DNA from: Magallana gigas
Lineage: Eukaryota
DNA: 64,000 nucleotides
Assembly (NCBI RefSeq): GCF_963853765.1
Contig: NC_088856.1
Coordinates: 5,580,001 to 5,644,000, forward strand
Reading direction: 5' to 3'
Numbering within the stretch: position 1 is the stretch's first letter; every line of letters starts with the position of its first letter. The notes under the pieces were generated by a model that was given only the letters and a program-made list of their open reading frames with translations, did not search any database and was not told the origin of the DNA. Positions 3,099-57,940 of this stretch are shown piece after piece. Made by a program: the position numbers and the translations under genes.

Positions 3099-3144
<46 letters not shown>

Positions 3145-16585: not shown

Positions 16586-16835
16586 ATCAAGATTTATAGA
16601 AAACACATCACAAGATTATATAATATACATCACAAGATTTTAAAACATACATCACATTATTATAGAATATACAGCACAATATATAGAATATACATAACAA
16701 GACATTAATCATTATCGAATATACACCACAAGATATAAGATAAAGAAAACACAACACAAGAATTTGAACATACATAAAAAATTGTGGAATATATATCACA
16801 AGATATAGAATACCATAGCAAGTTACTAAACATAT
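16586..16835. repeat. Degenerate ~22-bp minisatellite (ACATCACAAGATTATAGAATAT-like)
   Basis: Repeated CATCACAAGAT / ATAGAATATA units. A longer paralogous block lies at ~40672-41050. Confidence 0.7.
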
Positions 16836-18723: not shown

Positions 18724-18764
18724 TCACTTCTTACAAATAACAGCTTGTGCTTCAGCAGCTGAAA
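18724..18764 (-). CDS. Paralog 1 exon 6 (terminal)
   Basis: Acceptor TTTCTAG; (I)SAAEAQAVICKK-stop (TGA). Confidence 0.8.
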
Positions 18765-21700
18765 CTAGAAAAATGTTGCTAAAGCAATTAAAATGTGAAG
18801 TGCTATATTTTTTTTTTTGAAAAGACAAATAAAACTGTTTCAAACTCACTGAATTCCATAGAACGCTGGAATTTGATTGGTCTAGAAATCGGTCCACAAA
18901 GGCTGCACCATCCACCACAGGTAAATGATATCTTGTCTCTATTCACGGAACGATGGAATTGTTTTATAGCCGCCCTATACCCATCTATGACACCAAATTC
19001 AATCTTAAAGTCATAATAAGTACCACTTTTACATTGCTACGAAATGCGTATTCCATACATATTTTACTGTTTTGTGGTGTTGTGTAAATATAAGGGTTTT
19101 GTATTCATGATTCTGGGTTTAAACTCAGGCTCATGAAGGAGAGTCAATTACACGTAAGTAGTTTTGATTTTAACGAACTAAATATTAATCTTAATTTCGA
19201 GCGTTCCCCTGACAAACCTTATCTTAAGAACTTAAATCGGATGGGGTCAAAAACCACGACTTGAAAACCCAATTGATGACCGTGATTTTAATTGACTTCC
19301 CACCAAAATATATGACGCGCACTACATGGGAAGCGAACATTTTTTTTAAAAGTGGCTTGAATACCAAAACACAAACGGTAGAGTCTTTTACTTAACCCAG
19401 TCGGGCAGTTCGGATAAACCAAATCCGGTCGGGTTTTTTTATTATACAAGAACTGTGTTGTCGAGTCAGATTACGATTTTGCAGAAGAAATTGCGGACTA
19501 ACGACTACAAACGCGCGTGTCGAATGTCAGCGTAGAAAAAGATTGAAAACACATATTATAATGAATAAGTAGGTACAAAATTATAAAAAATGAATGGTCA
19601 CAAAGCATTTTTTTTTGGTATTTGAGTTAACTACAGGTTTTGAAACATTAAGAACTCAGGTACCAGTGTAATTTTGGTTCATCGCAGATTTTCGGTTTGG
19701 TCTGATATTTCATTTTTAATTATGGAATGACAAAACATTGTCCAATTCCTTTATAACACAAATAGTTTTTATTTAAAACCCACCAGTCCTAATCATAATC
19801 ATTTCAAATTTAGTTTCTTGGTTGTAATCTATACACCCTTTGACTTGGGGCCTCGGTTTATATTGAATACAACCAGTGGAAGATCTCAGACACTCTGCAC
19901 CCTCAGTAAGACCTGTATAAGTGATATATCATGTTTTGTTTTAAAGATTATGTATTGTTTGTAATAGAAGAGGTGGATTTACTACTAGGTTCGAACCTAG
20001 GACCTTTCAGTTCACAAACAAACACTCTAGTGCAAGTACTAAAGTAGAAGCGTAACTGACGTGCGACCAATTCTCATCTAGTACCATTTCTTGCCAGTGC
20101 ATTTTTACTTTTTCGTAAAGTAATTTAATGTTGTGATAAAATGACGTAATAACATTAACAAGATGATACTTGGCATAAATTACTTGCATCTGCAGCCAAT
20201 ACATCATTCTATTGGATGTTAGTAGCTATTGGACTATGGTTTCTAATATCATATTCAATGTCAATTGCTATTGGACAATGATTTCTCATATCAGATTCAA
20301 TGTCAACAGCTTTTGGACAATGATTTCTTTGATTAAATTAGATGTCAACAGCTTTTGGACAATGATTACTGATATCAAATTCAATGTCAACAGCTATTGG
20401 ACAATGATTTATTATATCAAATATTCAATGTCAACTGCTTTAGGACATTGATAACGTAATAAATTCAATGTCAGGTATTGGACAATGTTTTCTTTTATAA
20501 AATCCAATGTTAACAGCATTTGGACAATGATTACTTATAAATGTAAGAGACGAACTCCTTATAATGTTTTATAGAGATTTGATTTTGATTCAATACTATT
20601 TAAAAGTTGGTATCAATGGGGGTTGGGGCAGCTATTAATATCAAATACAGTCCTTTATATATTGATGCAGCTAAGTAAACATTAAAAAATTATTCAACAT
20701 TCAATCATACTGTAGGATCAACAATCAGTCCAGTCCCTCTGGTATCAATGGTTGCTGTCCCAAAGTGAATACAAGGGTTGGTGTAGTGTTTCCCATTACA
20801 ATCATGAGCATATCCATACTGGATTGGTTTTGATCCGGTCAGCGATGTGAACGTATCATCAGTTCCATTTACCACCATGCTCTGTAAACAGACATTGCAT
20901 TTTTGAAGTATTTTTTTTAAAAAAAATAACGAACATACAATTAACAACTTGAATTCCGTCAGTGTTTATACATATAATAAAACATGCAGTATACAAGTTT
21001 TACCTTTATCTGTAATTTCACTTTTAAAAACTCTGCTTTTTTTAACGGAAGGCGAATAGCCGATTGACACTCTTGACCCTGTATTATCCAATTTGTGATG
21101 TCATGGCGAACAAAGATGTTGGGATATTTTAAAGTTATAAAATGTGAAGGTTCAGTCGCTAGGTTGTGACAGTATATTTTCGTTCTTCTCCGATTTGTTA
21201 CGATTGGATAGACCCAGTATTCTCCGTCTGTTGTAATACCAGAACAATTTGAGACGGCGAGACACGACTCTGGAACTGCAAGGAAAAGCTATCTTAAATG
21301 TTTGCGGTTAAGGTAGAATAACACACCTAGAAAAAGTTACTCAAATAAACAGGAAATATTTTGATAATGAAAAATATAATGACAAATAAACTGTACAAAT
21401 GTCAAATAAGCGAAAAATTTGCTGTTTGGGAAAAAAATTGAATATCTAAAATAGTTATTGCAGTAAGTAACGACAAAGGCGTCTGCGGGATTCGAACTCG
21501 GGATGTACGGATCACAAGTCCCGACACTTCATCGATTTGGCTATCAAGTAATTTACCTGTTTCAGTCTATAAAATGCTTTTAATAAAACGAAATGTCGTC
21601 TCGATCAGCGGTCAGCCATTTTGTGATGATGTGTTATTCAACCTTAAATATCTTTACTTTAAAATGCTACTAGCGATGCCATTTTTACTCGAATAAACAA

Positions 21701-24700
21701 GTCGATTTAAAGTATTTTAAAATATGTTATCTAAATATCCGATAGCAAATGTCGTTGCTTATTAAGGTATTTCGTTTGGAAGACCTTATAGTGATTGTAA
21801 TGTTTCTTATTATTATTTTTTTCACTTTTTTGTCTAGTGATCTGAAATTATCAGAAGTAATTGAATATAATAATTTTTAGAGGTATCTTACTTCTTATGT
21901 ATTTGTTGTTTTCTTTTTCGGCGTAGCTTCCAGTCGTCACCGGAAGCACATAAGAATTTTTTTTTACTTCTTATTTTATTTATTTTACATGGAATGAATA
22001 TATCAGGATAAAATTTAATATAAGTCATATATTCAATGTTTAATAAGCAAACAAATTTTACTTCCTGTGAGATATCTCAAATACTGTGGTTTCATTAATA
22101 TTTGTTGATTACCAATTTTTGTTGATTTCGTTGTTAAGATTATCATTGAAACTAAATATTCATTGAACTGCAAATTGTACTAATACTTTGTATTCATAGG
22201 GTAATTGGCCACGAATTTACGTATCCTTGAAACTATGATTTTCACTTTATCCATGAAAATTGATACCCTTGAATACTAATGAAAGCTTTTCTTTTCCAAA
22301 TCTGATACCTGTGAGATATAAGTCACTCTAAGTGGTTGTGACACAAAACATTTAGGGAATGATATATATTTGATAGAAGATGTGTTTTTATTAACAGGTC
22401 TTATTTTGTCAACTGTCATTTCCGGTTCTCAGCGGAAGGGTTCATCCAAATCATATTTTTAACAAGTTTAAATGTGTTTCTTGAGTGATCATCTACCCTG
22501 ATAAACAGTGATGTAAACTAGCCAAATGAACAACAAGTTCTAGCTTTTATTTTCATTAATCACTTCCGTTCTTTCATTTCCGGTCGCGAAATAAAAAGAT
22601 TAGTTTCGAAGTTATCTCATATTTGGTAGAGATTTGAACAACAAACTTTGAGGGAAGATTGACTCATGATTGTGAAAATGTTTCACAAGTTTTATTTGGT
22701 TAGCTGTTATTTGCAGTCGTCATCAGATCACAAAAATAACTAAACGTCTTGATATTTCAATCACAGCTATCATCATATTAATTATTTCTTTTTTCTACGT
22801 AAGAGAAGCAATGGCTTATAGTTCAACTGATACAAGTATATCAGAACGGAAGACCTTTTTAATTGTGTTTCCATTGCAACAAGAGTCTAGTCTTATTTTT
22901 CATCTTATGACGCTTACATATAATTGAGCTACAGATCATCGAATACAAATAAATTCAACTTGTCTTGTTCCATTTCAGGTCATTGTTTATTGGTCATTTG
23001 GTCATTGCCTAATGAACAATTCAGGATTAATGATGGTTAACTCATCCTTCACTTTCCGCCATGATATCAATTTGGCAACCCGTTTCTGGACACCCCGCTC
23101 TAGAAAGTTCTTTCCATTAATACTAAAGTTGCAATAATTTTTCCTTTTTTTATCAAATGTCTGTATTAATCAAAGTCTGATCCAAGGTATCTGCCTGCGA
23201 TGCATAAAAAACTCGTCCTACACTTTTCGTTAATTAGTCCATCCACGTTCTTAGTTGCCTTGCTCCGAAAAGTGTTATCCCATTCTCTCACCAGAGGTCG
23301 TGCTTTGCAAGCGACTGAGTATCAAAACTAAAATCGCCCACTAAAGCAACGAATTGACTTATTTTATTTATTTGACATTTGTTAAATCTTAACTTCTGTG
23401 TTTTCTTTAAATAGGCTCACGGTAAATATATTCACTCTTTACGTAATCATTCAATATTATTTCATTGAAAGGATATATTTTGATCGAGACTATCCCTGAC
23501 TTGGATCTGCCAAAGCGTGTTCACCACCTTACACTCAGTTTTGCTATTTCGGACTTGTTTATCGAAAATGAAAGTAGGTACACAATGTAATTGTTTAAGT
23601 AATTTTCTTAATTTAAAAAAATATATATTCAAGGGCCATTAACTCAAAAAGGAAATCCATTACCTACTTTTTTCAAAGTGAAAAAGAACACTACAATTAA
23701 AAGTCTTTAACACGCATCAGATGGTTTTTCATTTCCATCATTAAATTTTTTTTATTTTAAGTAAACGTAATCCTTAAACATACCATTATTTTTACATAAA
23801 TGTATTTAATGATTAATAAGGGTAGAGATTTCGAGCTTTATTTAACTTGACAAACTATTCGTGCAGCTCAATGTCCGTTTATAGCTTACCCCATCGGGAT
23901 CCTCTGTCCTCCAACACCCAGTAATAGTCGACGTCACCTCTGTCGTCACTGTCATAGATCACGTTGAAGAGGTCACATGACCCGTTAGCCATGTTGTACA
24001 GTAATGACACGCAGTCCGGTTCCTGGGTACACTTGGCGGCACAGTAACTACGACGGGGGAAATGTCCCGACCATATTGCCATGTTTGGCTCTATAAGGTC
24101 AACACGGGTTGTAGTCCGTCTCAGAAATATATCGTCTGGAAAAAATTATTGTTTTTTATTTGTTGGTAAGTATTTTTATGAATATTCAAGTTCATCCTTA
24201 CGAGATAACCTTTTGAAGAAAGATTTATATGTTAATGTATATATAACATTTATTTGTATGATTCATTTTTAATCTTGTGTGATAAATGGGAATATAAATT
24301 TAATTCTATATATCTATGTTGTTTTTAAAACAAAAACGTAAATTGAAACAAGAAATATTTGACCACCTTTATCTAAAATCTCAAACATATATTTTAATCT
24401 TTTCTTATGTTTTATTAATAACACCACAGCTGATCTCATTCAACGAAATTCTGACTTTAGGGTGGTATCGTTTAAGATATTCTAAAATTTACAATACTGC
24501 AAACTATTTTTTAAAATATTGTTTTAGATATAAATCTAAATTTTAAGGATGAAAAGAATCCTTGTGCATTTTTTCAAAATTTCACGATACAAATCTTTAT
24601 TTTATTTTATTTTTTTTATATAATTTGTCTGGGATTTCAAGCTTAAAGTTTTTTAATGTTCAATGCACAGTGACAATTCACTAGGAGCAATAGAAAATAT

Positions 24701-27700: not shown

Positions 27701-27933
27701 CGCAATACTTTAGTGTTATTAAATGCAATTTAAATATGAAAAATCTTTTTCTCTCAAAAATATCGATTCATTTTTAGCTTTAACAATAAATTTCCATTGG
27801 TACACAAATTATATATTTATACCATTGGCGATTACCTAAACAACAGATTTTAATTCCTACCTGTTTTTCCAAAAGAAGACAGGATGATGCGTACACACAA
27901 AACGATTACTATATTTTGTGTATAGCGTAGCAT
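18724..27933 (-). CDS. Secreted PAN/Apple + GON domain protein, paralog 1 (318 aa, 6 coding exons)
   Basis: join complement(27861-27933, 23890-24135, 21004-21275, 20711-20881, 18850-19003, 18724-18764) = 957 nt. All introns GT-AG with compatible phases (1,1,0,0,1) and no internal stop. Signal-like MLRYTQNIVIVLCVRIILSSFGKT; PAN core CAAKCTQEPDCVSLLYNMANGSCDL; GON-like PESC..DGEYWVYP..KIYCH..YGYAHDC..IDTRGTGL..CGGWCSLC. Confidence 0.85.
18850..19003 (-). CDS. Paralog 1 exon 5 (GON domain, C-terminal part)
   Basis: Acceptor CTTTAAG, donor A|GTGAGT; IEFGVIDGY..SFTCGGWCSLCGP. Confidence 0.85.
19975..20035 (-). other. tRNA-derived (SINE-head-like) fragment
   Basis: B-box GGTTCGAACC within the hairpin CTAGGTTCGAACCTAG. 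No acceptor stem. Confidence 0.35.
20213..20535. repeat. ~42-bp minisatellite, ~8 units, in intron 4 of paralog 1
   Basis: Repeated CAATGTCAACAGCT(A/T)TTGGACAATGATT units; not seen next to the equivalent exon of paralog 2. Confidence 0.8.
20711..20881 (-). CDS. Paralog 1 exon 4 (GON domain, middle)
   Basis: Acceptor TTTACAG, donor ACA|GTATGA; SMVVNGTD..YGYAHDCNG..IDTRGTGLIVDPT. Confidence 0.88.
21004..21275 (-). CDS. Paralog 1 exon 3 (GON domain, N-terminal part)
   Basis: Acceptor CTTGCAG, donor AAG|GTAAAA; PESCLAVSNCSGITTDGEYWVYPIVTNRRRTKIYCHNLATEPSHFITL. Confidence 0.88.
21312..21643. mobile_element. Kolobok-like non-autonomous DNA transposon with tRNA-like core
   Basis: TTAA on both sides (21308-21311, 21644-21647). 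TIR GGTAGAATAACAC / GTGTTATTCAACC. 5'-GG terminus fits Kolobok rather than piggyBac. Internal minus-strand tRNA-like segment at ~21476-21548. Confidence 0.7.
21759..22897 (+). mobile_element. Degenerate Helentron-type HINE (second family)
   Basis: 5' TTATTAAGGTATTTCG..GGAAGACCTT inverted repeat, TTA microsatellite and 3' subterminal ACGGAAGACC. Interrupted at ~22082-22290 by a TACTGTGG-type MITE remnant. Confidence 0.5.
23890..24135 (-). CDS. Paralog 1 exon 2 (PAN/Apple domain)
   Basis: Acceptor TTTCCAG, donor G|GTAAG; C-x3-C-x5-C-x11-C; overlaps ORF 23879-24082. Confidence 0.88.
24860..25030. mobile_element. Degenerate palindromic foldback repeat
   Basis: AAGGAATAATTCTT..GAGGTCATGATTTCGG is mirrored by CCGAAATTATCAC..AAGAATGATTCCT. 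Confidence 0.45.
27861..27933 (-). CDS. Paralog 1 exon 1 (signal peptide)
   Basis: ATG at 27933; MLRYTQNIVIVLCVRIILSSFGKT; phase-1 donor ACAG|GTAGG. Confidence 0.7.
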
Positions 27934-30900
27934 TGTTCAGCACTTATTTTCAAATTAATAGTAAAGAACAAGTATCAGAAATGATGAAATTGTTATACTC
28001 GCACTTATACTGTTGCTGTTCATTTCCGAGAAATCGCGGTTGTCTTTAATCAATTTTTAAATTAAAGCAAAGTAACGTTATTGATTAATTGTATGAGTAA
28101 TTGATTACCTGCAATTGCAGATTACTTTGTGGACGACATTTAAAAAAAACATTCAAGAATCTACCAGTTTTTTTTTATTTTATGATGCAATGTTAAACAA
28201 AATTTGAAAACACAAAAACCATATGTAACCGACATCTTTAAAAATTATATGTGATTGTGCTTTTGGAAAAAGAATGCTTATGGCTTTTTCAACGGGAAAA
28301 TTATGGTGTCGTATTATATATGTACACACCATATCAAAAGGACATATTAAAAGTGACCTGTAAAATTGAACCTTAATAATGTAAAGTAAGCGTAAATAGT
28401 GGCCATTATCTTTATAACCCCTTTCCAATAGCAAAAGAGAATCTAAGGGGGTTCAAAATTTTGCAGCCAATGTATTTTGAACCCCACTATCTAATAGTAA
28501 AAGAATATTGGGGTTACCAATGTTTTGCATCAATAATAGTATTAACCCAATTTTTTTTTATTTTATAGGGTGTTCGCAGTAGCACAATATTGAGCATATA
28601 CTGCTTCAGCACTAGGATCTGTAAAGTTAATATTTACTATGTTAAAAAGAGTGATTCAAGTGAAGATGACATAATGCTTCAATGTAAGCTCAAATTACCT
28701 GTATATATTTTATGAAATATTAATTTAAAATGTACCAGTCCGTGTTAATTGATCACACAAAATTATAAACGAAGAAAGAATGGAGTTGTAATGAGAGAGT
28801 ACCTGAAGTATATTAAAAATGACAATTCCAAGAGTTTTAAAAAAATTGTAAAATTTATCAAAATTGATCAAAGGAAACGCAATCAAAAAAAATTCTGAGG
28901 TTTATGGAAACAACGACAATAGTAAACAAAGAGATCGATTTAAAAAATCACTAAACAAAGTTAAAATACACCAATAAATGCATATAGAAAACGTACTTAA
29001 ACAACCTTATTTTCGTACATGAGCAAGAAATCGATTTGAAAAGTAACTTAAAAAGAAAACAAACTGAATACTTTGGAAATTTAATGTCCGCAGACTTTCT
29101 GATGTTTTACATTCATAAATGATTCTTTCAATTCTCAGCTATTTAATATTACCTAAACACTTCATCTCTGACAACACAGGAACATGGGTTTTTAGTCAAA
29201 TTGAAGTTAGGCCCTGCATATTAATTATTTATCATGCCCTAGAGATCTTTCGGCAAAAATAGGAATAATTGGAAATACGGCCTTTGATTTAAATGATGGG
29301 TTTATTTGAAGAGGTAAAACAACTTTCATTTAAAAGTTTGAAAGAGCTGATTTTGATTTCTTAAAATTGTATAAAATTACTAAATTGGTTTCACTCTTAA
29401 TTAGATTGTTTAGAACCTATTGTCATTGTAAAGCAAATAGGTGACAAGGCAATCGGAAGAGGCCTCAATAACTTGTGCAGCCACATTCCTGCATAAAATA
29501 ATACAAAAATAAACTAGAGACGAGCTCGTTGTAAGCAACGATTATGTATTCTGTTGTAGCTGTCATACATGTGACATAATACAAAAAAATGATTCCTGAC
29601 CATGGTACAATATTAAATGTATAAACACAAACAAAGTACTATACTACATGTATATATAAGCCAATACATATCTTAAAAAGTTGTCCATAGTTTGATTCGC
29701 CGCATGTTGTTTTTTCATCTGCATTTTATTTTGAGAAACTTATTTAATCAACATAATTGACTTAATATAGAAAGAAGATGGACGACGATTATTTTCACGC
29801 AATGGGTATGCCCGGTATGAAGCTAAAAAGACCAAACATTTTAAACGATTTTTTTATCGAACGCAAGCGCCAATGTATCTTTTAGTATACATGCGGAGAT
29901 CCTTGAAATTTTAAAGGGGGGTTTGAAGAATAATTCTGTTTTTCGAGGAGGGGGAACGTGCACGGATCAGAAAATTGTCAGGGTGGGGTTTGAGGGTCTG
30001 ACGGTTGAGTTTGCCAGGGGATGTCCGAGGCATAATTTTCGTAGTTTTTTAATGTACATGTAATTCAAGGACACTTTGCAGGGGTGGGGCTGGTTGGAGT
30101 CTGTAACCCTCTCCCTTCCTTTCTAGATCCTTGCAATTGATGGGAAGACCGGTGCCGGTAATTTTACGGTAATTTTTAACCATTTTTATTTAATTAATCA
30201 TTTTCAAAACTATCGGAATGCCAATATCACATTTAAACGCGGTTAAAACTTAACATACGAACCATTTAGTCTAAGTGAGTATTCCGCCAACATGCATCAG
30301 CATACGAAAGAAATTGCAATATTCAAAAAATTCGGATGGACGATCTGGGTCCTAGGTCGTCCATCCGATTCTGTTTCAGACTAAGAGCTACAGACCTGCA
30401 GTTAGAGATTCTCAAACTCTTATTGATTATGTCAATTCATTTTGTCTCAAAGAATCAGGTTTTTTTTTAATCAAATAAGTTTTACCTTAAATAAAAGAAA
30501 GAAATCGGGCACAAATTTTAATGCTAGCATTTTTCAATTTAAATGTTCAATAAAATTTGGACGAAGTTTCAAGATACTACTCTTCGTTGCTTTATCCGAA
30601 ATATTGCATGGAAAAAACACTTTTTTTAAATTACATAAGGATATACAAAATGAATTTAGATTAACCGGTAACAAACAAACATAAAGAGAGACTGAGAACT
30701 TTTTTTTTCTTTCTTTTTTACATCAAAAGATTGTTTTTCTTTATATGCGTTAATGAAAACATTGACCAGCAAGGTGTTCTTTGTCGTGCAAACACCTAGT
30801 TGATAAATTGTTACACGGGTCTACAACGATGAAATATATCGAAAAGGTAATATTGTGCGTGAACGATGAATGTGTAGTTTGTTTAAGGTTTATTTTTGAT

Positions 30901-31224
30901 AATTATATTTATCTGGATCAATTTTGTTTGTTGGTTTGTTTTGTTTATTGAAACGGGGAATAAAGAAAATGAGTAATTTCCGATATGAAGTAAAGCATAT
31001 ATTTTCATATCATTATTGACTTAATGCATGGTCACCCATGCAAATGTGTTCGGAATGTTTTCTCTATCGTTGCTAAGTATGTTATAAATCCAGAGGTGCT
31101 CGAATGAAAGTTCACGAGACTTCACCGTTACATTGTTAATTAATAATTGATGTTTAATTGTTATCAACAAACAAAATCATAAATTTATAATAATATGCAG
31201 TCTGGAAAGTTAAACAAAAAGAAC

Positions 31225-31422
31225 TAAAATGCCAGGGAGTTTTGTTTTCTCTATCTGCTGGACGATTTCATTCGTCTCAAATCAATAGGGTGTAATACAC
31301 ATGCTCATACGTCAACCGATTAAAAACTGTATTTTGGATTTATAAAGCGTTCTAAAACATATGATCTGATATATCGTTATTAACAATTCCAAACTTTGAA
31401 CGACTGAATTAATTTTTATACC
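31225..31422 (+). repeat. 198-bp direct repeat, left copy (probable LINE target-site duplication)
   Basis: TAAAATGCCAGGGAGTTTTG...GACTGAATTAATTTTTATACC; matches 36744-36941 with scattered differences. Confidence 0.88.
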
Positions 31423-31644
31423 GACAGACAGACAGACAGTCATTCTTTATTTCCTCTATAAGTTAGAGATTAAATCCATCAAACAAGTGTTTGGTGCAAT
31501 GTGTTTACAATAAATAGTTCTGAAATTTCAAACATAAAATTATCATGAACACATATATACAATTACTTATATACAGAACACAGTCAGGGTTCAAATATCA
31601 TGGAGTGTTCATCTTGAATCGCATATATTTTAAACAAAATAACG

Positions 31645-34600
31645 TTACAAGAGTGTTCGCATGTCCTTTATCATCACTGTGATGCCTTCCGAAACTGAAA
31701 GCATATAGCTTTCCCACTCCTCCTCTGGAATGACGTCGTCGTCCTTCGATCCAAGAATAGTACCAACTATTACGCTGTCCGAGTTGTATGTCAACTTGAC
31801 ATATGTATTTACAGTCAACGAATTTACTATAAGATGCATAAGATACTCGCGACTTTCATATACGTCAGGACAGTCTAGAATAAAATGCTGTACTATATCG
31901 TTTACTTTTCTTTTACAGAGCTTACACGACACTTCCTCTGTTTCATATGTAAAAGAAAAGTTGATTAATTCAAATAATTTCCAGGTGTATTCCGGATGCT
32001 GAAGGCTCAATGACCAGAGTGGATGAGGTTCAATATATTTATGCACTTCGGCAAAGCGGCTAACTTCTGGTCGACTTTTCAAAGATTCTCTCCATTCGTC
32101 CTGAGAAGAATTACGAATGAGAGTGTCGATGTATTGGTTCCAACTTGACTTTGAAGGTGTTTCACTGTTACGGAGATACTCATTAAAGAAGTAATCAATT
32201 TTATAGTTTTTCATGGTTCTATAGATACAATTAACGAACCCACGTTTCTTTTGGGGCGTGCCTACCGAGTATGTACACAATCTTGCAATGAACAATTTTT
32301 TTAAAAAACAACGAGTAGTTAGATCTGCAGAGCCGATTGTAGAAGAGTAGATGAAGTTTTTAATTCATCTTTTCCATTTTAATAAGACCTAGTGAGTAAA
32401 TAGTGCACGCAGAGGGAGATTGCTGATCAAAACCTTGAATCCTGCGTGCAGCAAATCTTTGTACGATTTCAAGGTTTTCCAAAGATTTTTTAGATATATC
32501 TGTCCATAATTCACAGCCATAAAGCACTGCTGGTACAACAACAGTTTTCCACATTTTGCAGCTCATGATTGGGTTCATGCCATGCTTGTGCACTCCTATG
32601 TTTATAAGAGAGTTCATTATTTTTCGCCCCTTACAGCATGAACGCGAAATGGCACTTGCACATGAAAGTTTGTTAGTAATTGTCACCCCGGCGTAGATGT
32701 TTTCGTCTGTGATATCGATAGGCGAGTTTTTGTTCCCTAAGAGGAATATGTTTTCAGTGGCAGATTTTCTACGGTTAGGTTTGGACGTAAAGTATATAAT
32801 GCAGCTTTTCAAAGGGTTATATTTCAACCGCCATTTTGACGCATAATCAACTACGACATTTAGTTGCTTTTGATTGTAGTTTGAGTATTTGATATAAGTG
32901 ATGTCATCGGCGAGAATAATACAAGGAACATGTAGATCGCAAATATGTGGACCAATGTTGAGACGATCTAGCTCAAGAATGAGGCCATCTATCATTAAGA
33001 GAAAGAACCAAGAGGATAGAACTCTGCCTTGTCCAACTCCTTGTCTCATGGTATAATTGCTTGACATTTTCCCCTCGTAAAAAATACAGGAAGTCATATT
33101 CTGAAATGAGTCAACAAGCAAGCGCCATCCTTTTCCATTTATCCCAATATGAAACAGTTTGTAGAATAAGCCGGCGTGCCACACACTGTTAAAAGCTTTT
33201 TCGTTATCTAGAAAAGCTACATAGACATCCGAGTATCTTTCTAGATAATGATTAACAGTTTCAGATAAGACAAACGCTGCCGTTATACTGCCACACCCTG
33301 GTCTAAACCCTTGCTGTAGAGGGTGCGGAAATGCTATTTCACTGCTGTAGTTCTGCAATCTAGTGTACAATATATTTTCAAAGAGTTTCTGAAGGATGGA
33401 CATAAGCGTTATGTCGCGATAGCTGTTCATATCTAGTTTGTCTTTATTGCCTCCTTTGAAGAGTGTTATGGTAACTCCTCTTTTGAATTGTTGTGGATAA
33501 CATTCTGCATCCATAATTGCATTAAACAATTTTACTAGATGGATAAGTAAGATATCTTGAGTGATATTGATGTGTTCTGCTACAATTCCATCGAAGCCTG
33601 GAGCTTTTCCATTCTTCATTTTTTGTAGAGCAGCTACAACTTCATTTTCGTTAACGTGTGTTTTACTGATTTCATCACAGTTTCCCATTGAGAGCAAGTG
33701 CATTTTGGAGACTTCATGACAAATTGCGTTCTCAAATTCTACATCAAATGAGGGGTCTTGCTTTATTTGGGCTAGCCCTTTGTAATGTTCGTACCAGGCG
33801 TGCCGGATGATATCAGGATCACGAACAATTTTACCATCGACACGAAGTTCATTTGATGTCCACGATTTTTTATTGCGTCTTTTTAAAGATCAGAGCGATA
33901 AAATAGCCCTTAGTCCAGTTCATCTGTTTCTTTAAGACGAATGAATTATTCTTGTTCGAATTGTCTTTGTGCTCGTTTCAGAGCATTTGTGAACTCACGT
34001 TTGGCCCGCTTATAATCGCTATATGACGCATACTGCATGGCTCTAGGTTTACCATCGAGTATCCAAGTACTTCTTTTCTTCCTAATAACAGCGTGCAATT
34101 CTTTTACATTTCCACTCTTCCAGTAAGGTTTCAGGAACGGTCGAAAACGTTTCCTTGGTAGCGCAAGTTCTGCTGCGTGCACCAAGGAATAAGATAGTTT
34201 ACTAATATACTCTTCGATATCCGCAACAGTAGGGCCATTAAGAACAATGTTATCCGTAAAGTCACGAACCAACTGCCTATAGGTACAAGCATCATCATCA
34301 GACACTTTACGCCAGTTTACACCCATTTCTTTATCGTTCATTTCCGATTTGATGTTAAGAACCTCCTCTAATGAGATATTTAAGAAAATCGGAAGGTGAT
34401 CGGAGCAGTTGAGGTAATGATCTTTAAGTATGCCTGTCTCCTTAACGACATCAAGTTTGTCCTCTGAAATAACCACATGATCTATCAGTGATGTTCTCCG
34501 CTACGACCTACGTAGGAGTAGTCTGGACCAATGGTGTCCATCTGACTTGACGCTGACATTAGCCTGCAATCATCTAAAAACTGCTATAGAACTCTCCCAC

Positions 34601-35112
34601 GTTCGTTCGAATTGACTGGGTTTTATCTCCATATCCATGCGATAAGTGGGCATTGAAATCACCGAGTATCACCACAGGACCGTTTGCACTATATGTGTCG
34701 TGAAGTTTTTCAATATGCTCCAAAGTATGTCTGAATTCATCCACTGTTTGGTTTGTTGACGGTAGAAGTACACCAATTATATGAATATCGACATTTCTGC
34801 ATTTAGCAACGACAAGGATCACGCGATCGGTACGTTAGCGTTCGACTGGAAATACAGATAGTTCCTTTCTCCACATGATTGCGACACCTCCAAATCCTAT
34901 TGAACGGGTTCTGTTTTCTGGCTCAATGGGTATGCGTGTGTCACAAATGCCATATGCTTTAAAATCGGAGTTGATTGAGTCTAGAAAACTGATTTGTTCA
35001 AGTAGAGCCAGTGTTCAACAGCAATAAAAACATCTGTGTCATTTAAACGTTCTGACAGATACGGTGTTCCATACATGATTCCTCTTACGTTCCATGACTT
35101 TATTCGCAACAT
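31645..35112 (-). pseudogene. LINE ORF2 (AP endonuclease + reverse transcriptase + CCHC), frameshifted
   Basis: Starts MLRIKSWNVRG at 35112. Fragments in ORFs 34981-35163, 34574-34822, 33946-34476, 32360-33703 and 31645-32295. Confidence 0.88.
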
Positions 35113-35155
35113 GATTTGAATAAAGAAAAACGTGTATATAATCTGTGATAAAAGT

Positions 35156-36535
35156 TTAGCCATTGTAGGAATGATTATTGTTTTTGCGTGTAGCTTGCGA
35201 TTGCCACGGTCTAACTAAGATGCCGGATGGCCAAAATTCCTGTTCAAGTGCTTTTTCACAGTCCTCGGCTCGTACGTTCACCCGAAGTGTGTATGTAGGA
35301 TTCTTTTGCTTCCAAAGTTTAAGACCTGTTATGTGCGTAAAGAATTCGAACACGTCGCGGCCCCTTGCGTACTGTTTAATTGCACTAATTATTGATTGAA
35401 TATCTCCATCTGCTTTAACTCTTGACATTAGTAAACGTCTTGCTCGGGATCCTGACTTGACACCACGGAAGACGTATTTTATGTCCTCATTGTCTTTAAT
35501 GACTTCGCTCGCGTTTGCACATTCGCTTTCGTTCTGAACGCTGTCATTGTTCATCCGAGATGCATGATCCTGACATGCACTTAAGTGTTGATCATTACGT
35601 ATGCGTCGAATTTTGTCTGCGATATGATTTTCTCCACTTTGATCTTGATTGTTTTTATCTAGAAATGACACGACTCTTTCTGTTTGGTTTTTACTTTTTG
35701 ACTCTTTCACTTCCACATGGAGATTACTAGAGGGAGATTTGACAGCGTCTGCATATGAACAAGACGGAGAAGTGGGTCGGGTGGAATTACCGATAGCGGA
35801 ATCACACAGTGGCTTGTTTTGTTGCTCTTTAAGACAAAGTATTTCTTTATCTTTCTGTTTCACAAATGTACGAAGTGCAATTACCTCCCTATTTAATATT
35901 TCATTTTGAGACATGCACCTTTCGAACATTTCATTCAGTTTATCAAGAATTTCTTCTCGAAACCTAACAACAATATTGGCAAACTCCGGAATGTCGATAA
36001 CGGGTAACTGAGCGAGTTGCACAGGTGAGTGGTTAATGGATCTATTTAAAGGGCTTTTGTAAGTTTGGCTGTGTACCGTTTGATCGGCCGTCGGGCTTGA
36101 CTGCACATCTTCGTTGTGTCCGTAGACTGTTTTGACTGACGTTTGTGAACTGTTTTGGGAATTACTTATATTATATTCACCAAGCGATTTTGTTCTGTCT
36201 CTATAACATTACACTGCTTTTACCTCTGAAGTTTGCACATTACCCTCTATGTAATGAAATAACGTGTATATATCTTCTAAAAGTTTGTCAATTGCTTTGC
36301 ATTGGCCTGAATTGTTTCGTTTAACTAGTTGTCCTTTTGGTGTGTAAGGTCTACGATCTAACGCTACTTCATAGAGACATAGTCTTACATGTGTTATGTT
36401 CTCAGGAGAATCCCTGTATAGAACACCCAAGTTTTGCTTAAACTTGACACGATCAAAACTTCCAAATTTTTGCGCTATTTCTTCATATATAGCAAGAGCA
36501 CACTCACTGTCACTCTGACTTCGGTTGTCCGCCAT
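35156..36535 (-). pseudogene. LINE ORF1 (one in-frame stop at 36209-36211)
   Basis: ORFs 36209-36553 and 35156-36106 are in the same frame. Coiled-coil-like segment, SYADAVK, and C-terminal EFWPSGILVRPW typical of non-LTR ORF1. Confidence 0.72.
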
Positions 36536-36743
36536 GTCTATTTTTTCAAACATTTGTTGAATGAGAAAAATCCAAAAACTCTGAGTAGCTAGTACGAACC
36601 AATTATAATTGTGCTACTTGATCTAAGTATTTGCTTCTTACCCACACGCTGAAGGAGCAAGCGTGGAGTCGTCTCTTTCACCCAAAGTTTGTCAGATATT
36701 CACCGGAGCTCCTTGCCATAGGTGTGGTGGCCGCCATTTTTTT

Positions 36744-36941
36744 TAAAATGCCAGGGAGTTTTGTTTTCTCTTTCTGCTGGACAATTTCATTCGTCTCAAA
36801 TCAATAGGGTGTAATTCAGATGCTCATACGTCACCCGATTAAAAAACTGATTTTGGATTCATAAAGCGTTCTAAAACATTTGATCTGATATATCGTTATT
36901 AACAATTCCAAACTTTGAACGACTGAATTGGTTTTTATACC
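36744..36941 (+). repeat. 198-bp direct repeat, right copy (probable LINE target-site duplication)
   Basis: Directly abuts the LINE 5' end; matches 31225-31422. Confidence 0.88.
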
Positions 36942-48900: not shown

Positions 48901-51900
48901 CTAGAAAAACCAATGACTTTTAAGGCCCCTTCTGTGTTTTCCTCTGCTAGCGGAATTCCAAAATCTCTACAAGTATTCTGAAAACTTGACATTAATAATT
49001 TGCACCCTTCAATATCTATGGCTGCAAAAATGAAATCATCAAGGTAATGCCTTAATGTATCTTTACCTGTTTTTGTTATTGTCATCCGTTCTAGAAAACT
49101 AGCAAATTTTTCCCATAGAGCACAACTTATCGAACAGCCCATAGGGAGGCACATATCATAATAAAACTGATTGTTAAATGTAAAACCTAACAACTCTTGG
49201 TCAGCTGGATGTACGGGTAATAAACGAAAAGCTGACTTCACGTCCATTTTTGCAAGAAAAGAGTCTGTACCTAGGTAGCAATCATTTCTAAAACCTCATC
49301 AAACGGTGTGTAATACACCGTGCAATAATCTGGGTCAATGAAATCATTCACGCTACTTCCTTCAGGGAATGATAAATGATGTTTTAAACGCCAACCACCA
49401 TCTTTCTTAGTAACAATGCCTATAGGTGATAATCTAAAATTATGCAAAGGTACTTGATCGAATGGACCTGCAACACGACCTATTTCAATTTCTTTGTATA
49501 TTTTTTGTCTTACGTCCTCTGGGTGCTGTTTGGTTGAAATTAAGTTATCACACTGTCAGGTTGATGCAAAACGGGGACCAAAATAGTTGATTTTAAAACC
49601 ATATTTAAGCCATCCCTCAACTCACTAGCATCAAGAGTTTTAGGATACAAAGAAAGGTAAAGATGCATATTACACAATTTAATAGGTGTTGTTCCTGGTT
49701 TTTTGAAAGTTTGTTTTATGGGACTTTTTCCATGAGCCACGAAAAAAGTGAGGAACGGGCTTGTCAGAGCTTGGTTGCGACATAACTGTTTTGTTGTTTT
49801 GATATTTTTCATGACATTTAGTTGCCGGGTGTTTACCAGAACATTTCAAACATGTATGACTATAATGACAATATTGTCGCATACAAAACCCCTTATTTTT
49901 AAAGTCAAAGCATGCATTTCGCTAAGGCGATTGTTGCTCAGGCGCGTTTGATGGTGAATTAATATACAAAGCCATAATTCTTGATCGATTTGGTTCCAGG
50001 GAATACAATCATTTCTTGCTTTCTTGATGCGAAATTGTCTATCATATTACCTCCAACCAAATCCATGTGATCGACTAGAAGCAGTTTTTACATTTGCCAT
50101 ATATTTTAGCATCCTCTGTGCTTGATCGGGATGGGCTACTAAGTATATGCTCATGTAAATGAAAAAAGCATCTAGCCATGTTTGGATATCAAAAGTTTTG
50201 TTTTGATTCACTGGTTTGAAAGACAATTGACCGTTATTTAAAATGATTTTGTTTTCCTGGTCATTAACTTGATGTCTATCTAATAAACTGTACAATTCCA
50301 CGATTTCCCCCTTCATATTTTTTTGTTTTGAAGCATGAGCTACGTGCATGTCGAGTTCATCATTAACGCTAATTATAGCATTGTTAACTTCTAAATCTAA
50401 ATCTGCATTGTTTGAACGAACATTAATTCAATCAAAACTGGTACCTTCACATGAATCTGGCTGATGTGGGTTGATGATTGTTTCAATTTTTTGCTCAGAA
50501 TCCGTACCCGGGCCTGCCAGGGATTCCAAGTTGATTGCTGGTGGAGATTTTTCAACCAGTTGTTGGTTTCTTGAAACCACGCCATTATCTCTGGGATATT
50601 AATGTCTGGATTGTCTGTGTCAGTTCTGGGAGGATCATTTGAGATACAGATGCAGCTACTTCCTCGATGCTGACTCCGCTATTCGTCGGGTCTGTTTGGT
50701 CCGGTACGTTTTGAAGTTTCGACCTCTTAGTCCTACCCGGTAAGCGAGCTTTCCCGGCCAATTTCCTTTTATCGGTCTGCCGAACATCCGTTGAATGGGA
50801 AGCCTGACGGGGCTGCATTTCAAACAATTTTTCTTCACTCAGTCTACCCAGCTGATCTGTTTACAACCGTTGTAAAATGTGACGCAATGGGAAAAAAGTA
50901 TGACGTCACAATGTATACGGGGAATGAAATTTCCCAGATTTATTTATAGTACAGTTAGGTTTGTTCATTGCTATAATAATCTGATTTATTTTTCAAAAGA
51001 AAATAAATTTTATTATGTTTTATCAAAAGACACTGTCTGGTATAACAAATGCATTTTTTAAAATACTTTTTTATTTAAAGAAAAGGATATCACTTTCATA
51101 TCATTTTACTAATCGTTGTCTTTTTTTTCTAGTCAAAAACATCAATTTTTGGAAAAATACCATCCAACATCAACGTCAACTGTGCCTTTTAATATAGACA
51201 TGAACAAATTCACGCATAAATAAAACTCACTAATAAATGCATTATTTTAACTCGTTGAGTAAAGCAAGTATCATACCACACAATATAGATAACATCTACA
51301 TAAGAACCAATGCAAATGATGTTACCGAAGGCCCAGAAAGATATCGGTTAAAATTGCAATAGTCAAAATCACAAAAGTTAACACTCAAAGTACATTTTAA
51401 ATAATCCATTATTCCAACGAATTGTTGTTCAAAAAAATACAAATATAAAAAAACCATGCATTTTTACACGGGGAAACAATATTAGATTAATGTACCTTAA
51501 CACCTTGAAAACATTCATCCGTATCTATCTAAACTTGTCATTCGTCAAAATCTGTTTGACAGCTTTTTTGTGTACTGGGCTCTTTTTGAAAATCTATAAA
51601 TTGATGCAGCTAAGAAAACATTACAAAAAGTATTCAAAATTAGCTCATACCGTAGGATCAACGATCAGTCCAGTTCCTCTAGTATCAATGGTTGCTGTCC
51701 CAAAGTGAATACAGGGGTCGCTGTAGTGTTTCCCATTACAATCATAAGCATATCCATACTGGATTGGTTTTGATACGGTCAGAGATGTGAACGTATTATC
51801 AGTTCCATTTACCACCATGCTCTGTAAACAGACATTGCATTTTTGAAGTATTTTTTTTTTTAAAAATAACGAACATACAATTAACAACTTTAATTCCGTC

Positions 51901-54900
51901 AGTGTTTATACATATAATAAAACATGCGGTATACAAGTTTTACCTTTATCTGTAATTTCACTTTCAAAAACTCTGCTTTTTTTAACGGATGGCGAATAGC
52001 CGATTGACACTCTTGACCCTGTATTATCCAATTTGTGATGTCATGGCGAACAAAGATGTTGGGATATTTTAAAGTTATAAAATGTGAAGGTTCAGTCGCT
52101 AGGCTGTGACAGTATATTTTCGTTCTTCTCCGATTTGTTACAGTTGGATAGACCCAGTATTCTCCGTCTGTTGTAATACCAGAACAATTTGAGAGTGCGA
52201 GACATGACTCTGGAACTGCAATGACAATATTTTTTTCTAATTTGAAATTAAATTTCGTTATTGGTGAAATCTGTGAAAATTCATTAATGAATATATTTTA
52301 CATGTGAAACTGTTATAGAATTTATGACAAATCTTTTCAATGTGTTTTGATAATTTGACTTATCATTAATACAGGAACAGGCTCTGTCTTTTTATTATTA
52401 TTAAATTTTGGTTACTATGTTTATCTTCAGGTCCCCTTGGATTTATTTTTAGAACAATGGGTGAAAATTAGTTTGGACTAAAAAAAAATGTTATTATTAG
52501 ACTTCACAATATAATTCATTTTTGCTAAACTCCGATGTACAACTAAATTTTAAAAGTTATTCGTTCCAACGTAAATATATAACGATGTTAAGCAGCCAAT
52601 TCTCCCTAATTAGAATATATTGAATGTATATTGTAGCGACGATTTCGATCCAAAATATTAATATGTGTTTGCCGTTTTGGGGTTTTTTTTAAATCTTACC
52701 CCATCGAGTTCCTCTGTCCTCCAACACCCAGTAATAGTCGATGTCACCGCTATCATCACTGTCGTAGATCACGTTGAAGAGGTCACATGACCCGTTAGCC
52801 ATGTTGTACAATAATGACACACAGTCCGGTTCCTGGGTACACTTGGAGGCACAATAACTACGACGGGAGAAATGTCCCGACCATATTGCCATATAAAGTT
52901 CTATAAGGTCATCTCGGGTTGAAGTGCGTCTCAGAAAAATATCCGCTGTAAGAAATTGATATCATTGTGCACGCTATGTTCCTTTTTGTCTTTAAGGATA
53001 CAACATATGAAAAATTTCTAAATCTTAAGGAAATGAACCCCTCAAATTAAAAGTGATAAATATTTTCTATTTAAAATACAGTGACATAGTTTATGATAAA
53101 AAAAATAACACATCCTTTCATTTTGAATTCCGATGGTCACACACTTAAGCATCTACTAAGTATTAAAATAGGTTGTTTTCATTTTTTTTCTAGTTTAAGT
53201 GTGAATCGCATATCCTTATTTCAAAAATCATAGAATTACACCCACATTAAGGTCCGAAATGTGTTCCTCAATTCCTTCATATTTCATTACAAATGACAGT
53301 TTAAAACATGATTTTTCATCATGTTTACCAAAAATGTTAGCCCCGGTACACCCTATCAAAGCTATTGTTATTAAGCATCATTGAAAGAATTTATATCTTA
53401 AATTTTATGAATCTGTAGGCACCTTTCATTTACTAGAATTGACCTTAAAGCGCCCTTTAGATTACATTTTTTGATATTTTTTTTTATTTGCAACAGTTAA
53501 ACAAACAAAACGACTTTCTACGTCAATCTTTTCAATTGATATTATAGAATATACATGTAAATTATTAGAGACCTGATAAATACCTTAGAATGGATGAATT
53601 AAAAAAAGCTTACTATCAATCTTCTGAAAACACAATGTATAGTTATTGGTACGGAACAAACAGTAAGAAATTGTAGCGATTTATCTATACAACTTGAGAG
53701 AGTTGTCATTGAAAATGTGTCGTGTGCAAAACTTTAATGAGTTTACATTTAATAATGTTTCTCTTGGTCATGAAAATATTGATATATTGTCAAAAAAAAC
53801 TTGCAAGTAATATAGGTGTGTTGAGTATATTACGTTCATTTATGTCATCTGAATTATTGTGGAAAATTTTTTAATAAAATTGTTTTTCGACATTTGTATT
53901 ACTGCTCTACTTTCTTAAGATACATGAAGAACAAACATGGTCTTGACAAGTTATGTGAACTTCAGCAGCGAGCCGCTAGGGTGATTTTAAACAGCCAGTT
54001 TTACTCATGTATGTCAAAAATGCTACAGCAACTAAATTGGATGCCTTTTGCAGATTACTTTGAGTACAGAACAATTATTCCTGTTTTTAAATTTTACATG
54101 ATTTTACTTCAAATTAACTAGACACTTTAAGATATGTAAATGAAATAAACACAAGATCAACCACATCCAGCCGAAGTAATGCTTTATACATTGCACGAGC
54201 AAAGACAGAATATTTTAAAAGATCTTTTACAGTTTACGTCGCACTTTTATGGAATTATTTATCTCTATTTTGACATGTTACCCAACTTTAGAATCTTATC
54301 AATATGCTTATCGCAGAGAATACTTTTATTTGGCGTTACAGAGATAGCCTGTACTTATTTTCGTCGAAGGTTTATATAGTGTATGACTCTATTTTAGGCA
54401 ATTACATGTAGTTTAATCACAAATAATGTATCTTTATATTTATCTTAGAAATACATGGTTTGTATGTTTTATCAGTTTCTGTATATAGTTGCTGTCTGCA
54501 AGTACATGCACGTTTTCAAGACCCCAATGTGAACTAATTTTTGTAAGCTTCTTGTGTTATCCTGTATAATTAAAGGACATAATTATTATTTAATCTTTTC
54601 AAAGCTACTAACATATCTATTATCAGACGCCTAAAAACACAAAATGTTATCATAAATTAATTATTATATTCTTAGACTCAGATTTCCTCATAAAAGATAG
54701 ATAGTTACATATACATAGGGATGAACAATGTAAAAAGGACAATAGCAAACAGTCAACCATCTTAAAAATCCTTAAAACGAAATACAAATTCAAAGCAGAG
54801 CAACACGGACCTCTAAAAAGATAGAGGTAGGATCAGGTGCCATGTAGGAGAGAACATCCTCTTCTGACCGGTCACACCCGCCGTAAGCTCCTTGTCGTAA

Positions 54901-57190: not shown

Positions 57191-57241
<51 letters not shown>

Positions 57242-57244
57242 TAT

Positions 57245-57280
<36 letters not shown>

Positions 57281-57940
57281 TCGATTGTATCCATTGACTT
57301 TTTTTTGCAATCAAAGGCCAAGCTTTAAGCGAATTTAATAAAAAAAATTCTTACATTATTGTGTCATTGGGTTATATACATTTGTGTTATATCTTTTTCG
57401 CTCTTGTTTTGCTTGCAAAGTAATAATTCACAACAATTATTATATGATAAGTACTGCTCTTTTAATATGTTTACACATTTTTAAAGATTAGCATGATTCA
57501 TAATAATCACAACATCAGGTTTAACACGGACTACAATAGAACTTTGCGGTATTTTCAAAAAGCTGGCGATATATTTTGAGGATGTCCTAAATTATTAGTT
57601 ATATTTTCTCACATGTTTAGGATTCTTATGATAAATTAGTTCTATTAAGTTATATTCATCGTACGTGTTCAAAAATATGTACATCTAATTAATGATAATA
57701 TTATGAAAAAGATATTGCGTGCCTTAATAGTAATACTTTATGTTAGATATTGTATTATAAACAAGAAGCGAAATAACTTGCATCAACATGGTTATACTTA
57801 TGGAAATATCAGTTTTACTATTTTTTTATTTTGAAATTAATATAACTACTTAACGATTAACTAAAAGTCTTACCTGTTTTTCCACAAGATTTAGTTATAA
57901 GAAGTAGACACAGAATTGCAACAATCATCTTCGGTATCAT
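42908..57940 (-). CDS. Secreted PAN/Apple + GON domain protein, paralog 2 (318 aa, 6 coding exons)
   Basis: join complement(57874-57940, 52700-52945, 51944-52215, 51651-51821, 43035-43188, 42908-42954) = 957 nt. GT-AG introns with the same phases as paralog 1 and no internal stop. Signal-like MIPKMIVAILCLLLITKSCGKT; ends SAAEAQAVICNKWN. Confidence 0.85.
43035..43188 (-). CDS. Paralog 2 exon 5 (GON domain)
   Basis: 154 nt; acceptor CTTTCAG, donor A|GTGAGT; SFTCAGWCGLCGP. Confidence 0.85.
43761..44264. mobile_element. Kolobok-like non-autonomous DNA transposon
   Basis: TTAA flanks (43757-43760, 44265-44268); TIR GGTAGTCTATC / GATGGGCTACC (9 of 11 match). Confidence 0.6.
44667..44886. mobile_element. 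Tc1/mariner(pogo)-type MITE
   Basis: Imperfect TIRs CACTATAAATTCCTAATAAAACGCGAG / CTCGCGTAATATTAGGACTTACAGTA; terminal TA at the right end. Confidence 0.6.
46547..47227 (-). CDS. SGNH/GDSL-type hydrolase ORF of the Ngaro element
   Basis: Block I IWIISSSII, block II WQGKGG, block III GGNDIG, block V DGVHL; overlaps the 3' end of the YR ORF. Confidence 0.82.
   Translation of the reverse strand: MRTKATLELKRIFVFSLYTYLLSYIGQERNIWIISSSIIKWAFQRACLSEEKAHLGLQRQNYRILWQGKGGLTLNKLFPRIQLLLRYEPSPDILIIQCGGNDIGNVPLLDLRTKMKEIFQRIQTRLPNTILGWSHILPRSSWRYSNNVKSQNFAAKRINSFMSKLFVQNDCFYISYPEIAWGSYGLFRKDGVHLTELGNDILLYNLQSTLQKICSFNGERGTRPVY
47079..48185 (-). CDS. Tyrosine recombinase of the Ngaro element (368-aa ORF)
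   Basis: FFRVVEFT, HSFRIGAAS and GRWSSNAYKSY give an R..H-x-x-R..W..Y catalytic set. Confidence 0.9.
   Translation of the reverse strand: MDKVQIARTGSGRSSFAHSRRFHEDDIRAEIELLALNSVAANTKISYNNSLRIFSSFRKDYGFSDIWGPPVSHLCVFIAHMSLKGLAYSTISSYLAGISFKCKLLCTNDCTKYFLVRYLLEGVKRSRKSIDQRLPITQDILKKLTSSSSYVCSSNFETLLFFAAFSLAYHAFFRVVEFTRSNTNNIHHIIGIKDIQIINDQSINRKLLKLTVPFSKTGQSGKDSSIQLVESDTQAVCPILLLLRYLSVRPNIGGQLFIHMDGSPFTRYQFTSVLNKSIDIICLSNSIYTSHSFRIGAASDSFLKGHSESEIMKKGRWSSNAYKSYIRIKKNFCFFLIYIFVIIYRSRKEHLDNKFIYYQVGFPTRLSF
48092..49400 (-). pseudogene. Ngaro reverse transcriptase / RNase H, frameshifted
   Basis: MDVKSAFRLLPV, LPMGCSISC, HYLDDFIF, FLGIEID, HTDN, NSIADSIS. Confidence 0.88.
49679..50827 (-). pseudogene. 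Ngaro gag-like ORF, frameshifted
   Basis: Fragments 50585-50827, 50047-50349 (WLDAFFIY) and 49679-49882 (CHYSHTCLKCSGKHPATKC zinc finger). Confidence 0.7.
51651..51821 (-). CDS. Paralog 2 exon 4 (GON domain)
   Basis: 171 nt; YGYAYDCNG..IDTRGTGLIVDPT. Confidence 0.88.
51944..52215 (-). CDS. Paralog 2 exon 3 (GON domain)
   Basis: 272 nt; PESCLALSNCSGITTDGEYWVYPTV..KIYCHSL. Confidence 0.88.
52700..52945 (-). CDS. Paralog 2 exon 2 (PAN/Apple domain)
   Basis: 246 nt, phase 1-1; CASKCTQEPDCVSLLYNMANGSCDL. Confidence 0.88.
54720..55290. mobile_element. Dispersed repeat remnant with structured GC-rich core (family uncertain)
   Basis: Core CACGGACCTCTA..TAGAGGTAGGATCAGGTGCC..GACCGGTCACACCCGCCGT resembles, from recollection only, a common bivalve retroelement-end repeat. 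Confidence 0.4.
57178..57280. repeat. (TAA)n microsatellite, interrupted twice
   Basis: Directly visible AAT run with two ATATTT interruptions. Confidence 0.95.
57874..57940 (-). CDS. Paralog 2 exon 1 (signal peptide)
   Basis: MIPKMIVAILCLLLITKSCGKT; donor ACAG|GTAAG; shares the GKT end with paralog 1. Confidence 0.75.

Follow-up and report, generated by a model that had tools for sequence, protein, structure and literature searches.

A 64-kb stretch of the Magallana gigas genome (contig NC_088856.1, positions 5,580,001–5,644,000; the window hereafter, numbered from its first letter) contains two sets of exons that encode a PAN/apple domain followed by a GON domain. Are these genes in their own right, the 3′ ends of ADAMTS-type protease genes or decayed duplicates, and what might their products do? 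Our analysis indicated that the two sets, here called gene A and gene B, are real, intact, tandemly duplicated members of a mollusc-wide family of PAN/apple plus GON proteins of approximately 300–410 amino acids (aa). The family is already in databases yet unstudied, and genes A and B are ordinary members of it. Current understanding is unchanged by this result, which is one of annotation and carries a testable functional question.

Structure of the two genes

Gene A (27933–18724) and gene B (57940–42908) both lie on the minus strand, and in the corrected splice models each consists of six exons totalling 957 nucleotides (nt), which encode 318 aa with zero internal stops. Every intron of both genes is bounded by GT..AG, and the intron phases are 1,1,0,0,1 in each. 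An earlier reading made from the letters alone (the sequence-only reading) had described two six-exon minus-strand genes of this length with the same phases and no stops, and the models matched it to the base; its end points were also exact, position 18724 being the final base of the gene A stop codon and 57940 the A of the gene B ATG. The window is AT-rich (approximately 32% GC) and has zero runs of N.

In gene A, exon 1 (27861–27933, 73 nt) carries the ATG and a hydrophobic leader and ends in phase 1; it was read from the sequence, and 24 of its 24 residues match exon 1 of the ortholog in Crassostrea angulata. The PAN/apple domain is encoded by exon 2 (23890–24135, 246 nt), and the first, middle and last parts of the GON domain by exon 3 (21004–21275, 272 nt), exon 4 (20711–20881, 171 nt) and exon 5 (18850–19003, 154 nt). 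The acceptor of exon 5 was set by homolog alignment, and the RefSeq ortholog shares this junction. Exon 6 (18724–18764, 41 nt) holds the conserved C-terminal tail with the last cysteine and the stop codon, and is matched by tblastn of family tails.

Gene B repeats this layout, with the ATG and hydrophobic leader in exon 1 (57874–57940, 67 nt), the PAN/apple domain in exon 2 (52700–52945; 90.9% nucleotide identity to exon 2 of gene A), the three parts of the GON domain in exon 3 (51944–52215; 97.1%), exon 4 (51651–51821) and exon 5 (43035–43188; the most diverged exon, 87.6%), and the tail in exon 6 (42908–42954), which was placed by homolog alignment. Only approximately 25 nt near the exon 1 donor align between A and B, so exon 1 of gene B was likewise located by reading the sequence. 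Gene B is two residues longer at its end because the usual stop position of the family is TGG in this copy. An AATAAA follows each stop codon, at +41 nt in gene A and +35 nt in gene B.

Self-blastn showed the duplication at the DNA level as three pairs of segments: 20656–21287 and 51595–52227 (94.6%), 23878–24147 and 52688–52957 (89.6%), and 16376–19347 and 40484–43537 (approximately 80%). The last pair joins the 3′ block of gene A, that is, exons 5 and 6 plus 2.3 kb downstream, to the corresponding part of copy B.

A 984-nt model of each gene, which used the most upstream acceptors, was rejected. The 11 extra residues that it places at the start of exon 5 are missing from homologs, and it was also wrong at exon 6, at the start of which homologs carry two more residues. 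In the alignment to full-length homologs, exon 5 begins 33 nt later and exon 6 begins 6 nt earlier than in the 984-nt model.

Domains and predicted fold of the products

The sequence-only reading had assigned to the products a signal-like N-terminus, a four-cysteine PAN core, a GON domain and the N-glycosylation sequons NGS, NCS and NGT, and all of these are present in both genes. On single exons, the PAN_1 profile (PF00024) scored 25.8 bits in gene A and 25.6 bits in gene B (cut-off, 21.4 bits). The GON profile (PF08685) scored 24.0 bits on gene A exon 3 alone, covering profile positions 2–47, and 22.6 bits on gene B exon 3 (cut-off, 22.6 bits); the hidden Markov model check proposed from the sequence thus gave both profiles above cut-off on window exons. 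The two exons after exon 3 carry on the GON profile at positions 93–153 (exon 4) and 161–190. The 97%-identical C. angulata ortholog of gene A, P0085 (XP_052679879.1), was used as a proxy for whole-protein Pfam analysis, folding and fold searches. It scored 73.9 bits for GON over profile positions 2–190 of 199, and 22.5 bits for PAN_1 against the cut-off of 21.4.

The mature proteins have 14 cysteines each, 4 in the PAN domain and 10 in the GON domain. The PAN core has the spacing C-x3-C-x5-C-x11-C, and its cysteines (Cys56, Cys60, Cys66 and Cys78) are invariant or nearly so across the family, as are the family cysteines in general in an alignment of 27 sequences. The sequons lie at residues 75, 116 and 202 in gene A and at residues 73, 114 and 200 in gene B. 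The N-terminus is the sole strongly hydrophobic stretch, and small residues (G/S) occupy positions −1 and −3 before "KT"; by hydrophobicity and the −3/−1 rule, the predicted precursor of approximately 36 kDa would have a cleavable signal peptide and yield a mature protein of approximately 33.6 kDa, which is probably N-glycosylated. The C-termini end in ...ICKK and ...NKWN, with no KDEL-like sequence for retention in the endoplasmic reticulum (ER).

The AlphaFold2 model of P0085, built on the 27-sequence family alignment, had a mean predicted local distance difference test score of 85.2 and a predicted template modelling (TM) score of 0.79. Residues 26–104 of the model matched solved PAN/apple domains (plasminogen, HGF, SML-2 and factor XI) with Z scores of 5–7.9 and root-mean-square deviations (rmsd) of 2.6–3.4 Å over 66–81 residues, the best matches having Z scores of 7.2–7.9. 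Compared with the PAN/apple modules of plasminogen, HGF (N-domains), factor XI/prekallikrein and the MIC4/SML-2 lectins, the oyster PAN domain shares the HGF-like spacing of the four cysteines, but it is a single module without the third (apple) disulfide.

The GON part matched the AlphaFold models of Q9P2N4, P59510, P59511 and Q19791, which represent ADAMTS9, ADAMTS20 and C. elegans GON-1, with E values of 3e-9 to 5e-11 and a probability of 1.0, both sides of the comparison being predictions. It also matched many "GON domain-containing proteins" in the AlphaFold DB clusters, the best of which was a Lottia protein aligned to query residues 30–314. In the PDB fold searches, no solved structure matching the GON domain was found beyond a 43-residue overlap with ficolin. 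This overlap concerns the start of the GON domain (P0085 residues 106–152, corresponding to exon 3 in the window at approximately 21140–21275), which superposes on the ficolin A-subdomain with an rmsd of 1.3–1.7 Å over 43–44 residues. Sub-threshold matches to COLFI (the collagen C-propeptide) also recurred for GON, and the domain may share an ancestral subdomain with the fibrinogen-like and collagen C-propeptide families. The PAN plus FReD proteins of cnidarians and molluscs have an analogous layout, in which PAN is followed by a globular cysteine-rich C-terminal domain. The remainder of the oyster GON domain, however, was unmatched by FReD or COLFI (Z scores of 2.8 or less), and the relation is one of resemblance, not membership.

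Relation to ADAMTS proteases

In its ADAMTS9-type protease context, the GON domain belongs to a protein of approximately 1,900 aa. The exons in the window could be read as the 3′-terminal exons of a longer gene of the ADAMTS9/20 type with its protease and TSP1 exons elsewhere, and the names that databases give to relatives are the sole point in favour: NCBI calls many family members "ADAMTS 9-like", "ADAMTS20" or "gon-1(-like)", a mislabelling that the sequence-only reading had foreseen. The observations that follow contradict this explanation, which we regard as extremely improbable. Both genes begin with their own ATG and hydrophobic leader exon, and the RefSeq ortholog starts at the same methionine. 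Neither the zinc-binding motif HExxHxxGxxH nor the TSP1 motifs W..W..W and CS..CG.G occurred in any frame of the 64-kb window. Transcripts that continue upstream into protease or TSP exons had been named as evidence to look for, and paralog mRNAs showed the opposite: for P0100, a paralog of 316 aa, three transcript contigs contained the complete open reading frame (ORF), preceded by a stop in the same frame two codons ahead of the ATG. Protease and TSP1 domains were missing from all 38 more distant relatives, and the 318-aa ortholog was without a protease Pfam match. The statement that these are not ADAMTS proteases was therefore supported.

The oyster proteins share the Pfam GON family (PF08685) with ADAMTS9, ADAMTS20 and C. 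elegans GON-1, and the predicted fold matches at a TM score of approximately 0.5 when normalised to query length. They differ in having no metalloprotease, disintegrin, spacer or TSP1 array; the GON domain follows a single PAN domain in a protein of 318 aa, and its sequence identity to the GON domains of ADAMTS9/20 and GON-1 is only 16–20%.

Relatives and annotation status

The ungapped alignment of gene A with XP_052679879.1 ("uncharacterized protein LOC128160587 [Crassostrea angulata]") covered 318 of 318 residues at 97.2% identity. Gene A was also 97.7% identical to the UniProt entry A0A8W8LZU4, a 213-aa M. gigas "Apple domain-containing protein". The latter is a partial model that begins with a methionine internal to exon 2 and runs on past the donor of exon 4. 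For the gene B protein, identity was 87.5% to that of gene A and no more than 86% to any of the proteins retrieved. A model of gene A thus already exists in the sister taxon, and gene B is apparently without annotation. The sequence-only reading had called the pair hidden between transposons; the first part was too strong for gene A, which is annotated in C. angulata and in part in M. gigas, and the second was correct, since a reverse-transcriptase element lies between the genes at approximately 31.0–37.5 kb and another within gene B intron 4 at approximately 45.1–51.0 kb.

The gene structure is no product of chance: six RefSeq paralogs from C. angulata and M. gigas, mapped to their loci, share with A and B a layout of six exons of 24/82/91/57/51/13 codons and phases 1,1,0,0,1. 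Exon 3, used as the query in a profile-free search of 1.84 billion representatives, returned 62 proteins, the longer of which were PAN plus GON, GON-GON or EGF-GON proteins. Word-based searches seeded with three such proteins recovered the oyster family in Saccostrea, Ostrea, Crassostrea/Magallana and C. virginica. Among the 38 more distant relatives (at least 200 aa), GON was found in 37, PAN_1 in 18 and Sushi in 10; their sources were oysters, Pecten, Haliotis, Patella, Lottia and Gigantopelta, and thus included a scallop, abalones, limpets and a vent snail. A tandem family of oysters has been systematically misnamed as ADAMTS proteases.

The tandem array and its counterpart in C. angulata

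The sequence-only reading had suggested a local expansion, and the C. angulata genome agreed with it. On chromosome CM046783.1, at least five annotated paralogs lie on the same strand within approximately 220 kb: P0073 (4.993–5.000 Mb), P0071 (5.054–5.062 Mb), P0068 (5.073–5.085 Mb), P0085, the ortholog of gene A (5.109–5.162 Mb), and P0070 (5.197–5.211 Mb). Window positions 1–10240 aligned to the upstream flank of P0068 at 98–99%, and the 14–29 kb part aligned to the P0085 locus at 94–99%, with the identity then falling to 90%, 89% and 82% toward gene B. The window therefore lies inside this array.

LOC128160587 and its paralogs in M. gigas and C. angulata (for example, XP_065939309.1, LOC128160565, LOC128159195 and LOC128161629) have the same six exons and phases and form a tandem cluster, and the flanking DNA is 94–99% identical to that of the window. 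As judged from these alignments, gene A is the ortholog or an allele-level equivalent of LOC128160587. The cluster differs from the window in that gene B has no annotated equivalent there. Between window positions 29437–43766 and positions 1–6391 of the C. angulata locus L001, identity is 97–99% near gene A and declines in steps, reaching 82% at the 3′ end of gene B; this end resembles the gene A ortholog (86%) more closely than it does its positional counterpart. The C. angulata copy upstream of the gene A ortholog is not a close equivalent of gene B.

Intron 2 of gene A is 2.6 kb long in the window versus 40.7 kb in C. angulata (L001 16878–57615). C. angulata also has an extra diverged GON-like fragment of exons 3–4 (L001 7263–7785), located 2.2 kb upstream of the gene A ortholog, that is missing from the window. 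The structure of the cluster therefore differs greatly between these genomes. Strong structural differences between haplotypes or taxa are typical of oyster gene clusters, and this locus shows them as well.

Transcription

RNA contigs from four runs were mapped on 18700–24200, which covers gene A exons 2–6. The X2 contig (263 nt, 3 mismatches, 98.9% identity to gene A) joins position 20881 to 21004, with CT..AC on the plus strand, which is the exon 3/4 junction; gene A is therefore transcribed and spliced at a low level. Further RNA contigs lie on exons 2, 3 and 4 of gene A, and a contig of another paralog shows the joins of exons 2-3-4-5. Junction-spanning reads had been proposed as a check of the gene models, and the outcome was mixed: the exon 3/4 joint of gene A was present in one contig, and no joints were seen at the other three introns of the mapped stretch, which were not covered by contigs.

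Within intron 2 of gene A, the segment 21276–22379 contains short repeat pieces with an RNA contig depth of up to approximately 4000, and a hairpin-like joint that goes back on itself was seen at 21778–21817 in raw reads. The high-depth RNA of this intron probably represents transcribed copies of a dispersed repeat and is not part of the gene.

Selection and the status of gene B

Between A and B, the synonymous rate (dS) was 0.167 and the nonsynonymous rate (dN) 0.049, with a dN/dS ratio of 0.29. Among eight paralogs compared pairwise, the mean dN/dS was 0.33 for the mature protein, 0.18 for the PAN domain and 0.44 for exon 5. No diversifying selection was seen in these pairwise comparisons, in which dN/dS was at most 0.67 in every 20-codon window. 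The value of dS varied from 0.17 to 1.1 along the gene, which is compatible with patches of gene conversion. The array grew by local duplication. Purifying selection has preserved both A and B while divergence built up in the leader exons and 5′ regions.

Either copy or both, B being the more plausible candidate, could still be young non-functional duplicates that look intact. Word-based searches of 5.8 billion clusters found no database entry that matches gene B, a retroelement of approximately 6 kb occupies its intron 4, and it reads TGG at the usual stop position of the family. Its leader exon and 5′ region fail to align with those of gene A, its 3′ part shares only 82% identity with the neighbouring copy upstream in C. 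angulata, and the expression even of gene A is very low. On the other hand, the 318-codon frame of gene B is open, none of the ten splice sites or of the 14 mature cysteines has been lost, the conserved AATAAA follows the stop, and a dN/dS of 0.29 at a dS of 0.17 is not expected of a dead copy. We consider such decay unlikely and regard gene B as an intact copy, at least one such copy thus being without a counterpart in the protein sets searched.

Possible function of the PAN-GON proteins

PAN modules contact carbohydrate or protein ligands in plasminogen, HGF, factor XI and apicomplexan lectins. The products of genes A and B are most likely exported extracellular binding glycoproteins, a reading that we hold with moderate confidence and rate first because of the missing retention signal, the PAN module and the multi-copy, structurally variable cluster. 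The predicted protein would be exported and act outside the cell as a two-module binder, with the PAN/apple module engaging a carbohydrate or protein and the GON module offering a further surface for binding or self-association. The sequence-only reading, most of whose interpretation held, had suggested extracellular recognition, a role that the proteins may have.

Several observations weigh against this assignment. Hydrophobicity and the −3/−1 rule were the only criteria applied to the signal peptide, and the hydrophobic core of the gene A leader contains an arginine. Expression was very low in the sampled runs, which contained only 10–16% of the sampled words from the exon 3–4 region of gene A; one of the five gene A junctions was seen (exon 1/2 lying outside the mapped stretch), the X6 contigs continue unspliced beyond the exon 4 donor, and the RNA support concerns gene A alone, not gene B, for which a database entry was also missing. 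A fast-evolving recognition family might show positive selection, and none was seen at the resolution used. Literature searches found neither an experiment nor a paper on any member of the mollusc PAN-GON family. Finally, the sole experimentally known role of the GON domain is inside the ER (PMC3338439).

That role is the basis of a different proposal, in which the proteins are helpers of the secretory pathway: GON would work in the ER lumen as a protease-free activity like that of GON-1/ADAMTS9, and the PAN domain may select cargo. The construct sig_GON, which consists of a signal peptide and the GON domain, suffices to rescue ER morphology and VSVG transport in worm and HEK293 cells, and ER-to-Golgi transport in gon-1 worms and ADAMTS9-depleted cells (PMC3338439). 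The oyster layout is essentially the same construct with a PAN domain added, and its predicted fold matches the GON domains of ADAMTS9/20 and GON-1. However, there is no KDEL/HDEL-type retention signal, the identity to the ADAMTS GON domains is low, as given above, and a many-copy tandem family with very low expression and structural differences between haplotypes fits housekeeping transport poorly. A helper role of this kind is thus rather improbable. By analogy with sig_GON, a narrower form, in which the oyster proteins would be natural protease-free "signal peptide + GON" proteins for ER-to-Golgi export with PAN choosing the cargo, is slightly more doubtful again; if true, it would offer a simple system for GON domain biochemistry.

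Extracellular binding remains the preferred reading. We found no solved GON structure, and the single function described for the domain comes from worm and human ADAMTS9. The small protease-free PAN-GON proteins are easy to express and could serve to study the GON domain.

Transposons and repeats around the genes

The retroelement between genes A and B (31031–37475, minus strand) contains a reverse-transcriptase ORF and has 201-bp terminal direct repeats at 31225–31425 and 36744–36944 that are 94% alike. It is absent from the C. angulata haplotype, in which the block is replaced by approximately 260 bp in locus L001. The 201-bp repeat was not found in L001 and thus seems to belong to the element rather than to represent a target-site duplication.

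The retroelement inside gene B intron 4 (45162–51016, minus strand) contains a reverse-transcriptase ORF (48861–49295), a GDSL/SGNH-hydrolase ORF (46550–47248) and a further ORF (47082–48188) whose ...HSFR...GRW..Y motifs resemble a tyrosine recombinase. Its direct repeats are split, 45162–45594 pairing with 46046–46478 and 45863–46053 with 50827–51016. This layout is reminiscent of Ngaro/DIRS-type elements.

Other repeats lie outside both genes. A 420-bp repeat occurs at 12985–13406 and 59977–60416, with 79.6% identity between the copies. Nearby, 24 codons at 59856–59927 match the start of P0019, a spurious 164-aa database ORF that reads through an intron of a family member. A tandem satellite with a period of approximately 166 bp and copies 86–94% alike occupies 3187–4988, and related satellite copies occur downstream of a paralog gene in locus L005 (20905–22394).

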